63,567 nt of DNA, filler included, from Reticulomyxa filosa (GCA_000512085.1; 27 parts of 27 records of this genome joined end to end with filler, not necessarily neighbours in it); one strand, 5' to 3'; counted from the first letter of the whole stretch, positions 53,548 to 56,671 are shown. The notes: generated by a model not told the origin, from the sequence alone. Program-made: numbers and translations.

Positions 53548-55124
53548 TTCATATTGGCCAGTTTTTGTTTGCTGGTCTTGAAAAATTTTGCAATTTTAAG
53601 TAGTGCAAAAGAGCAAATGAAACAATTTCATACCAACGAAAACAAGAGAAAGAGCATTTCTTTTTTGTTTATTTTAATCGTTTGTTTTATCCGATTTTTG
53701 TTATTACTTAAGAGCAAATAATTACTTTTGAAATATGTTTGTGCACTTCACAACGTTGTTTTCTTCCTGTTGAGTCACACTCTCTATTATTTTGAGATAT
53801 AAATATCTGCAAAAACATGTATCATTATTTATCTACTATGTTGACTTGATTTTTCCAACTAAGTGCTCATTTCTCATATTATCAATTGTACATAATATTC
53901 GGTCTTTGGAGAATTTTCACATATTCCAAATATAAAAAGTTTTAATTTCTTGAAAACATGTTATTTTCAATATTTTTCAACACTCAAATCTTTTATATTT
54001 AGTTCATTAATTAATTGAATATATAGCTTGCATTTAGTATTCGTGAACCGATATCATTTAAGTTTTTTTTGATTATTTTGTAACTAGAAAAAAAGCTAGA
54101 GCTCAATGTCAACAACTCAAACTACAAACACAAACACGTTTAAAGAATGTTTTTATGTTGTGCTAAGCTTACAGCATACATTACTGCTAGCACGTTAGTA
54201 ACGTGACGATTAGTGTATTGATATTGTTGGGGAACGACAGACACAAACATTACCAATTGGACGCAATGCTGAATGTGCAATATCTGAAAACGGACAAAAC
54301 GACGATACAAATTATAAACATGAAAAAATCATAATAAAATACTAAACATCAAAAGTCAGTATCCAAGAACTAATAATGTTGGAATTAACACTTATATAAT
54401 TCAAAGATTCTACAGTAGGTTGCAAAGAAAAATGAATGCATAAAACGATNNNNNNNNNNNNNNNNNNNNNNNNNNNNNNNNNNNNNNNNNNNNTTAATTA
54501 ATTAANNNNNNNNNNNNNNNNNNNNNNNNNNNNNNNNNNNNNNNNNNNNGTTGTTAAAATGATTTTGAAAATCGATGATGTCATGCAGCCCGCTGAAGTC
54601 TATTATTAAAAAAAAAACTTTAGGGATTTTTTTTCCCTCAGCTTTTTTGTCTGCGCTTGTTTGTTTTTTTACTTTGCAATGAGTTAACATTTTTTTACTT
54701 CAAAAAGCACAAGATGAAACAGTGCGAATTTTTTGTTGGAAAAAAAAAAACACCCTCTCTTCCAATGCAATTTATTTGTGTGATTGTTTTGTGTTGGTTG
54801 ATATGAAGTCTATAATCATTTCAATTGAATATTTTCGATTTTCATGATCAAAATTCCTTTTTTTTTGCAATTTAAAATTTCTTTTTCGTTTACATGTACA
54901 AGCGCCAAAAAGGAGAGCAAAGAGAAATAATAATTCTCTTGTCAAAGGTAGGAAGAGAGAGAAAAAAAAACAAAAGAAATTACAAAAAAAAAATTGTTTC
55001 AAAGATACCAAGTTCTTGATGATGGAGGGGGAAAAAAAGAAAGTAAAAATTCATGTTTTTATTAAACAATGATGAAAGGCCCACAAGGATAAAAAAAAAT
55101 AACAACAACAAAAAAAAACGCAAT

Positions 55125-56590
55125 TTAATCGTCCCATTCTTCATCGTCAGATTCCTCATGGTCTGACTCATCTTGCACATAAGTGCGGTAATTGGCTAGA
55201 GTAGCTTGCAACAAAGAAGCCACATCTTGAGGAGCACCGTCTGAATGTGATTCGGATGTGGATGATTGTTCCTCTTTGACAACTTTTTTAAGAGTCGAAT
55301 CTCTGTTAAAGCTGGCGATTTGTCCCAATAGATTAACTCTCGGAACAGTAGTAGTACTATTACTAGTAGTAGTTGTAGTAGAAGGAGGTTTGGTAGTGGT
55401 AGTGGTAGTGGAAGGGGTAGTGCTCGATTCCGTCGTTCTCGGCGAGGTTACATCGGTGAAGGATTGTTGAGAAGGCAGCGGAGGTGGACCATTTCGATTG
55501 GGTGGGATGGGAGCGCGTCCAGGACGACGAGGGGGTGGCACAGGCGGGGACGCTGGAGATACCGTGGACATTCTTTTGGAGGCTGGCGGAGGAGCAGGAG
55601 CTGTTGGAAGAGGTCCAGCCGAGGAAGCACTGGATCGAGGTGGCGGAGGTGCCATCTTGGAGACCGAAGATCGACTCAATACTGTAGTAGCAGTAGTAGT
55701 AGTATCAGTTTGTTGATCAGAATGTTCTGTCGTTCCATCACTTTGTGCTTGCGAAGAAGAAGAAGAAGAAGAAGGTTTCGGAGGGGGCTTCGTTTTGACT
55801 TTATTTCGACCCTTTGTTTCTCTGACTTTTTTCCACTCTTCAATTTCGGCGATTTTGTCGTGATCGGTGATGGTGATGGTAGGGGCGGTGCCTTCCGGCG
55901 ACGTGGGTTCTCTACGCAGTCGCTTTTCCAAATCGACGGGATTGCACGGCCTCAAATTGTGTTCTTCTTCGTCCACCGTGTCTTCCATCTCATCAATCCA
56001 CGCTTCCATCTCTGTGTCATATTCGCAACAAATGATCACACTTCCCATCGCCAAGCTGTCATTGGGAGTGAAATTTTTGTTTTGTGGGATCACGGCAAAG
56101 CGGAACTTGCCTTCTTCCTGCAACGCCTCTTCGATGAGCGGATTGCGCAGTATACGTAGTCCAATCAACGGAAACACGGCGACCATTTCGCCATTTTTCC
56201 AACGCGACGACACAGTACCGATCACCAAAATATCATTGCATAAAATGAACACATGCGGCTGCCATTGCTTGTTCTTGATGATCTTCAACGTCCCATGACG
56301 CACACATAAGCGATGCGCCGCCGTCAGCAAAATCTTATCATTAAACACGTCCTTTTGCAACTGACCCACCAATCGTCGACACTTTTGGTCGCGACATTTC
56401 GTCGATATCTCGTCCGTCATCTTCTTAATGTCCACAATCGCCTTCAACAGATCCTTCGCCGCGTCGCTGTCCTTCGTGCCCTCGTTCTCACAGCTTTTGT
56501 ATACGCCGGCCATGTTCTGCAGGTAATGTGGTAGTCGAGACACCGGCGCGTCCAATAATGTCTTCAACTTTTTTTTCGCACAAAGTTCTT
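55125..56590 (-). CDS. RhoGEF (end of DH plus PH) with Pro-rich region and C-terminal WH2-C-acidic (WCA) tail; last exon
   Basis: DH LKTLLDAPVSRLPHY..LLKAIVDIKKMTDEIS; PH RLCVRHGTLK..HVFILCNDILVIG..EMEAWIDEM; poly-Pro; WH2 RVNLLGQIASFNRDSTLKKV; C DVASLLQATLANYR; A DESDHEESDDEEWDD*. Confidence 0.85.
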
Positions 56591-56631
56591 TTTTTTTTTT
56601 AAAATTTAAAAAAACAAACATTTACCAAAAA

Positions 56632-56671
<40 letters not shown>

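Follow-up and report, generated by a model that had tools for sequence, protein, structure and literature searches.

The piece of the Reticulomyxa filosa genome studied here is a whole contig of 2,122 bases, at positions 54550-56671 of the window (the 63,567-nucleotide stretch of joined R. filosa records and filler that was analysed). All coding features of the RhoGEF/WCA gene lie on its minus strand, where a stop-free frame runs from 56621 to the stop codon at 55127-55125. An in-frame TAA (56624-56622) is found immediately 5' of the ATG of this ORF, and the single usable AG acceptor 5' of the conserved residues is at 56589-56588. Because the TAA precedes the ATG and the sole usable AG ends at 56588, we set the start of the terminal coding exon at 56587. 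The exon (55125-56587, minus strand, stop at 55125-55127) is in phase after this AG, and these limits agree with the 55125-56590 given in the original prediction. The G+C content of the ORF is 48%; it drops to 28% on the 3' side and to 4% across the 50 bases that precede the ORF, a stretch of poly-A and poly-T extending to the end of the contig. An AATAAA at 55058-55063 (minus strand), ∼60 nt 3' of the stop in the AT-rich flank, is a possible polyadenylation signal identified only by its match to the consensus. An Rfam scan of the contig detected no RNA family, and the only tandem repeats on it are a TGGTAG run within the part encoding the Thr-rich spacer and a terminal poly-T.

In the region 56588-56630 (minus strand), we also noted a GT (G|GTAAAT) 38 nt upstream of the AG acceptor that may mark a mini-intron; by eye, the bases before this GT would extend the ortholog alignment (K-I-x-E-x-C-A) without a gap. 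On the plus strand, an Arg-rich ORF of 231 residues (55464-56159) lies antisense to the Pro/Ser/Thr-rich spacer; we take it to be a spurious compositional mirror of the spacer and not a gene. A search for the 5' two thirds of the DH domain, with the first 145 residues of the Ammonia protein as the query, found no R. filosa piece and matched only other rotaliid fragments. The contig of the R. filosa paralog (L009) breaks at the equivalent point inside the DH domain.

The exon encodes the C-terminal third of a DH (RhoGEF) domain (56355-56585, minus strand), covering positions 115-178 of 180 in Pfam RhoGEF (E 3.5e-4) and placed additionally by alignment to ECT2 (6l30). This fragment holds the CR3-like motif APVSRLPHY and a helix with ...TDEISTKCRD. 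The match falls below the Pfam cut-off solely because two thirds of the domain are off the contig; full-length orthologs and relatives score 80–108 bits, the full-length foraminiferan ones 80–85 bits. Directly after the DH domain is a PH domain (55977-56330, minus strand; Pfam PH 25.2 bits, cut-off 25.1), which AlphaFold2 models as a beta-sandwich with a C-terminal helix. The AlphaFold2 model has a pLDDT of ∼90 across the DH domain, and Foldseek matched DH-PH tandems at E ∼1e-12 (Ephexin4, P-Rex1, Asef, Net1 and others). Both Pfam and the models thus place a DH domain and, right after it, a PH domain in this protein, as in the Dbl family.

The PH domain is followed by a linker (DTVDEEEHNLRPCNPVDLEKRLRR...TITITD...IEEWK; 55824-55982, minus strand) that was recognized by its conservation and has no Pfam match. 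It is the most conserved stretch of the foraminiferan clade, with 76% identity and a pN of 0.14 between the R. filosa paralogs, and AlphaFold2 predicts two short helices within it. We consider the linker a candidate regulatory or membrane-binding helix. A short D-F-E-x-x-[IV]-K-K-K element is all that is left of this linker in the cercozoan and WW clade. The adjoining Ser/Thr/Pro-rich spacer (55344-55823, minus strand) is predicted to be disordered, with pLDDT values below 50 and no secondary structure, and evolves fast (27% identity and a pN of 0.51 for the same paralog pair). Its Pro-rich core, at 55467-55658, comprises 62 residues of which 39% are Pro, including five runs of PPP or longer. 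A Pro-rich region is therefore located 5' of the WCA, as is found in class I nucleation-promoting factors (NPFs).

The remainder of the exon encodes a WH2-C-A tail. The WH2 motif (PRVNLLGQIASFNRDSTLKKV; RVNLLGQI...LKKV) is located at 55281-55343 (minus strand), aligns to the WH2 of N-WASP and displays the class I arrangement of an LLxxI helix followed by LKKV/T, with a linker between the helix and LKKV that is longer than in WASP. AlphaFold2 predicts a short helix at this position. The Pfam score of the R. filosa motif, 14.7 bits in a scan of the last 100 residues, is under the cut-off of 23.1 bits; relatives score 24.8–46.7 bits, above the cut-off, and WH2 was matched in 8 of 11 family tails with a best E of 8e-7. 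The strongest matches are in Mataza (46.7 bits) and a second Nonionella paralog (36.7 bits), each with two matched stretches. Two members, P0027 and P0028, keep C-A and have no recognisable WH2.

The connector (C) helix (PQDVASLLQATLANYRTYVQ; 55173-55232, minus strand) carries the family signature and aligns to the C region of N-WASP in 6uhc chain H. The C-helix motif quoted in the original prediction, DVASLLQATLANYRTYV, is present in the product of the exon, and AlphaFold2 predicts the helix with a pLDDT of ∼60–76. Its residues are V, L and L at i, i+4 and i+8, followed by Y-R-T-Y-V. According to Kollmar et al. 2012 (PMC3298513), C domains in general contain three large hydrophobic residues with a spacing of three, after which come two or three basic residues and a closing hydrophobic one. 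The R. filosa helix fits this pattern, including the spacing to its terminal Val, with one Arg where a basic doublet or triplet is general; in many cercozoan members this place is taken by RK. The hydrophobic moment of the helix is not significant, as 12% of shuffled sequences reach the same value, and for this reason we base the term amphipathic on the i, i+4, i+8 pattern and the predicted helix. The tail ends in an acidic A region (...SDDEEWDD; 55128-55172, minus strand) with 11 acidic residues and 1 basic residue in the last 20 positions. Its terminus, ...DESDHEESDDEEWDD, places a Trp at -3, the acidic Trp end of class I NPFs.

To compare the tail with known structures, a profile built from 11 tails was searched against 177,635 PDB sequences. 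The best match was the N-WASP VCA in the Arp2/3-bound cryo-EM structure 6uhc (chain H, E 3.4e-4). In this profile alignment the tail is colinear with the N-WASP VCA: positions 8–77 of the profile correspond to N-WASP residues 427–501, covering WH2, C and A and ending with the final residue of the chain. The next matches were other N-WASP constructs and the WH2 motifs of cordon-bleu and WIP. A single tail sequence searched against the PDB gave a chance match only. The AlphaFold2 prediction for the R. filosa product, for which the relatives were used as the alignment, consists of a PH sandwich, the two linker helices, ∼160 disordered residues, the WH2 helix and the C helix. Between the R. filosa paralogs, the pN of the WCA is 0.22 and those of the DH, PH and linker are 0.14–0.19, with synonymous sites saturated. 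The WCA value is near those of the folded domains, and thus the tail is constrained like a folded domain. In order, spacing and C-terminal position, the tail matches the class I WCA that had been proposed from the sequence, as judged by the N-WASP profile alignment and the patterns of Kollmar et al.

The gene has a paralog in R. filosa itself, RFI_18153 (ETO19085.1), which is 54% identical, ends in the same tail and is located on its own contig as the PH-to-tail part. In the database this entry carries just a PH-domain annotation, since its gene model, like the one studied here, is cut off inside the DH domain. A word-based protein search found orthologs with the same tail in Ammonia sp., Bolivina argentea, Nonionella stella and Rosalina sp., and the full-length foraminiferan orthologs, of 631–728 residues, have a complete DH domain, PH domain, linker and spacer. 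The cercozoan members are from Mataza sp., Paulinella micropora and P. chromatophora. DH, PH and tail occur in one product in Ammonia, Nonionella, Mataza and Paulinella micropora (transcripts or predicted proteins), and a more distant clade with the same tail adds WW domains (P0012, P0025-P0029). All nine named members that we looked up are rhizarian, and at least seven other named rhizarian species share the domain order. An Atlas search returned generic metazoan RhoGEF clusters, all below 0.9.

An exhaustive profile search yielded 7,568 DH proteins, and a C-A tail was present in 34 of the best 150 cluster representatives; at 50% identity, this family-specific tail is shared by ∼35 clusters. 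With cluster mates included, 51 sequences share a C-A signature, in which hydrophobic residues at -4, 0 and +4 are followed by [ST]L..[YF]R.[F]V and then by 10–30 mostly acidic residues. The tails of 46 of the 51 have a Trp at -1 to -5, in most cases at -2 or -3 and in two cases at -1 or -5; three end with Phe instead of Trp and one tail is incomplete.

The order of DH-PH, linker, Pro-rich spacer, WH2, C and acidic Trp end is thus conserved and under purifying selection. The RhoGEF-PH-WH2-acidic Trp architecture described in the original prediction is real, is carried by a single exon and has been conserved in both Foraminifera and Cercozoa. The proposed tie to reticulopodial motility in particular is weakened, as the family also occurs in filose or thecate cercozoans, among them Paulinella and Mataza.

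Several members depart from this architecture. P0068 has a DH-PH-C2-WW-WH2-C-A arrangement, while P0137 (Paulinella chromatophora) combines PH, SH3 and B-box with a C-A tail and has no Pfam RhoGEF match. P0038 and P0058 have heads of 550–630 residues with no Pfam match. Lastly, relative to the near-identical P0003, P0013 (Ammonia sp., MMETSP1384) has a 33-residue internal duplication at residues ∼595–640 that spans the start of the C helix and reflects either a true tandem duplication or an error of assembly.

In DH domains, a Gln and an Asn contact the switch regions of the GTPase, as described for Dbs, Tiam1 and Trio, and mutation of the Asn provides GEF-dead controls for Trio and Kalirin. 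The R. filosa product has Ser, His and Ser at the positions of the PVQR Gln, the Arg/Lys of R-x-x-[KR]-Y and the Asn of I-N-E, respectively, and the canonical GTPase-contact residues of Dbl-family RhoGEFs are absent from this product and largely so from the family. At the Gln position, only one of 37 tail-bearing members has Gln, and 14 different residues occur there, compared to Gln in 59 of 96 other DH matches. Four residues further on, where 57 of 96 other matches have Arg, 35 of the 37 tail-bearing members have Gln or His. Similarly, the position of the Asn in ECT2 I-N-E is occupied by Ala, Ser, Thr or Gly and never by Asn in tail-bearing members (0 of 37), whereas Asn is present in 51 of 92 other matches. 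Thus, the PVSR that had been noted in place of PVQR was read correctly and extends to the family, with Gln absent from 36 of 37 tail-bearing members. [quoted passage not shown]

The altered residues and the tail are found together. The canonical triad is present in 49 proteins of the DH match list, and Gln plus Arg/Lys at both positions in 57; none of the 49 and none of the 57 has the tail. The non-canonical DH type comprises 34 proteins with the tail and 28 with no detectable tail, many of which are fragments. On a quick FastTree tree of the DH-PH region, which is indicative only given its long branches, the DH type switches only three times. The rest of the DH domain is well kept: full-length orthologs retain the CR1 Glu, and P..RLP.Y is invariant. 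A variable contact position and an absent Asn favor an altered or non-catalytic binding role for the domain. Judging from these residues, we lean somewhat toward the DH-PH head being an altered or non-catalytic GTPase-binding module over its being a standard exchange factor.

To place the family among known Arp2/3 activators, we searched the R. filosa product and 14 full-length or long relatives with Pfam for the heads of WASP-family proteins (WH1/GBD, WHD, WAHD1, WMD/coiled coil, IMD, or GBD only) and found none. The Pfam heads in those relatives are RhoGEF and PH, accompanied in some by WW, C2, SH3 or B-box. Because no named head domain is present, the family falls outside the WASP, WAVE, WASH, WHAMM/JMY, WAML and WAWH subfamilies, and the earlier statement that the N-terminus is unlike the heads of known class I NPFs agrees with these scans. 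We found no description of a DH-PH plus WCA protein in the literature searched, which covered few subscription-journal papers, and 'undescribed' is used here provisionally. A rhizarian family of this type is not listed in the WASP-family survey of Kollmar et al. 2012 (PMC3298513), and a survey of the Dbl family contains no mention of WH2, WASP or Arp2/3.

WASP and N-WASP share with the rhizarian family a Pro-rich region, after which come WH2, a C helix and an acidic terminus whose Trp is at -3; a link to Rho-family GTPases is presumed in both. They differ in that WASP and N-WASP have WH1, a basic region and CRIB/GBD where the rhizarian family has the DH-PH tandem. Additionally, compared to WASP, the R. 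filosa protein has one WH2 with a longer, thymosin-like linker, and the rhizarian C helix is family-specific (L..[ST]L..YR.FV), with a single Arg in R. filosa. SCAR/WAVE likewise combines a Pro-rich region with a single C-terminal WH2-C-A, and its known output is Rac-controlled; in contrast, the rhizarian family lacks the WAVE homology domain and shows no sign of a five-protein complex. In Bigelowiella natans, also a rhizarian, SCAR was looked for and not found (PMC5461030), and on this basis one could speculate that the family described here might cover part of the SCAR role.

Lineage-restricted subfamilies that join another head to a Pro-rich region and VCA have a precedent in WAML, with an IMD, and WAWH (PMC3298513). 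WAML is the closest precedent for a head swap. The heads of WAML and WAWH are IMD or GBD and occur in Amoebozoa and Apusozoa, whereas the head described here is DH-PH and occurs in Rhizaria. A separate RhoGEF, GTPase and NPF act in one chain in the intersectin-Cdc42-N-WASP pathway. In Dictyostelium, GxcM, RacC, WASP and Arp2/3 similarly place RhoGEF, GTPase and NPF in series, and this GEF is canonical with PVQR present (PMC10072221). In both pathways the GEF and the NPF are separate proteins, unlike the single polypeptide described here, in which the DH domain is without the canonical Gln and Asn. The family shares its fold with Dbl-family DH-PH RhoGEFs including ECT2, which was the second-best PDB match by sequence and also has R-L-P after the PVQR position, but differs from them by the replaced Gln, Asn and Arg/Lys and by the WCA tail. 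Foraminifera are a labelled group in published trees of Arp2 and ARPC1 (PMC5455982).

Taken together, we consider it likely from the sequence comparisons that this exon forms the 3' end of a gene encoding a class I NPF of a new subfamily, so far Rhizaria-only, whose head has an altered and perhaps lost exchange function. By analogy with the characterized proteins, we infer Arp2/3 activation, actin binding and GTPase binding by the rhizarian protein. In the proposed mechanism, the PH domain and nearby basic residues would bring the protein to the membrane and the Pro-rich spacer would recruit profilin-actin or SH3/WW partners. The WH2 would then hand over an actin monomer, and C and A would bind the Arp2/3 complex, leading to branch nucleation. 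The DH-PH head, which probably binds a Rho-family GTPase, would replace the WH1/GBD or the WAVE homology domain and couple the tail to that GTPase. It could serve as a sensor or anchor and perhaps also mask the C helix; putative autoinhibition of the C helix by the DH-PH or by the conserved post-PH linker is plausible. A more specific, rather speculative and in our view less likely form of this reading holds that a pseudo-GEF head acts as a Rho-GTPase sensor, that the C helix is autoinhibited until the GTPase or lipid is met at the membrane and that the system is Rhizaria-specific and in part a substitute for SCAR/WAVE.

Exchange activity in the head has to be weighed against a non-catalytic role. 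From its sequence, standard exchange by the DH-PH head appears the less probable option, and we are doubtful of the fuller version in which an entirely active RhoGEF is combined with an active WCA, so that Rho/Rac-GTP and branched actin come from one polypeptide in a positive-feedback or coincidence device. On this explanation the odd DH residues would merely mirror a divergent GTPase partner. Indeed, the DH domain is strongly conserved at 80–108 bits, with the CR1 Glu and P..RLP.Y retained as above, ECT2 is itself active with the same RLP after PVQR, and the many Rho GTPases of R. filosa (PMC5499878) are possibly divergent. The difficulty lies in the contact residues themselves, as a Gln position that accepts 14 residues in 37 members is nearly unconstrained and the Asn position is never Asn. 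A contact position so released from constraint speaks against a conserved catalytic interface of the canonical kind. The head could nevertheless be an atypical GEF, in which case Rho-GTP and branched actin would be made at one spot.

A different alternative concerns the tail, which might not activate Arp2/3 and might use its WH2 and acidic segment to bind actin monomers or another partner, thereby regulating or localising a RhoGEF-like protein. The sub-threshold WH2 in R. filosa, the single Arg in its C helix, the members in which WH2 is not recognisable (P0027 and P0028) and the existence of actin-binding regions in other GEFs are all compatible with such a tail. We nonetheless consider it improbable, since the V-C-A order, spacing and terminal position are those of N-WASP, conservation within the tail is strongest in C and A, its Arp2/3-binding parts, and almost every member has the terminal Trp. 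Furthermore, C-A is retained in the members that lack WH2, whereas an actin-only tail would predict the reverse. That the gene is an assembly chimera of RhoGEF and WASP-like sequences, or a dead copy, could be suspected from a contig of 2,122 bases that ends in homopolymer runs, but is very hard to credit: a single unbroken ORF spans PH and WCA, their order recurs on an independent R. filosa contig and in the seven or more other named rhizarian species, and the domains are low in non-synonymous change while synonymous sites are saturated. A chimeric join between PH and WCA, raised at the outset as an outcome that would undo the proposal, is contradicted by the single ORF, the independent contig of the paralog and these other species.

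Known Arp2/3 activators sit downstream of Rho GTPases, through a GBD in WASP or a multi-protein complex in WAVE. In the rhizarian family, the WCA output is joined directly to DH-PH, normally an upstream activator of Rho GTPases, and the catalytic signature of the DH domain changed along with the fusion to WCA. If the tail is active, the WASP family would gain a subfamily for Rhizaria, whose actin regulation is, to our knowledge, almost unstudied, and the protein would be a compact natural case of rewired signalling modules. If the sensor reading is true, it would be a third independent GTPase control of WCA, after the WASP GBD and the WAVE complex. The family would also offer proteins for the study of branched actin in foraminiferan and cercozoan pseudopodia and a natural test of the DH domain as a non-catalytic GTPase-binding regulator.

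Two further observations concern the transcripts and genes of family members. For a member of the WW clade, six independent transcript contigs (L003-L008, bases 1-30) share the 5' end CTTATACTTATTTGAG, which directly precedes the start codon and in one contig follows adapter sequence. This sequence may be a spliced leader, one that differs from the Paulinella leader quoted in PMC6053224. In addition, L002 (GCA_050043615.1) contains an intronless family member of 689 residues located ∼250 bases 3' of a tRNA-like fragment (bases 1-70), an arrangement that suggests a compact genome.
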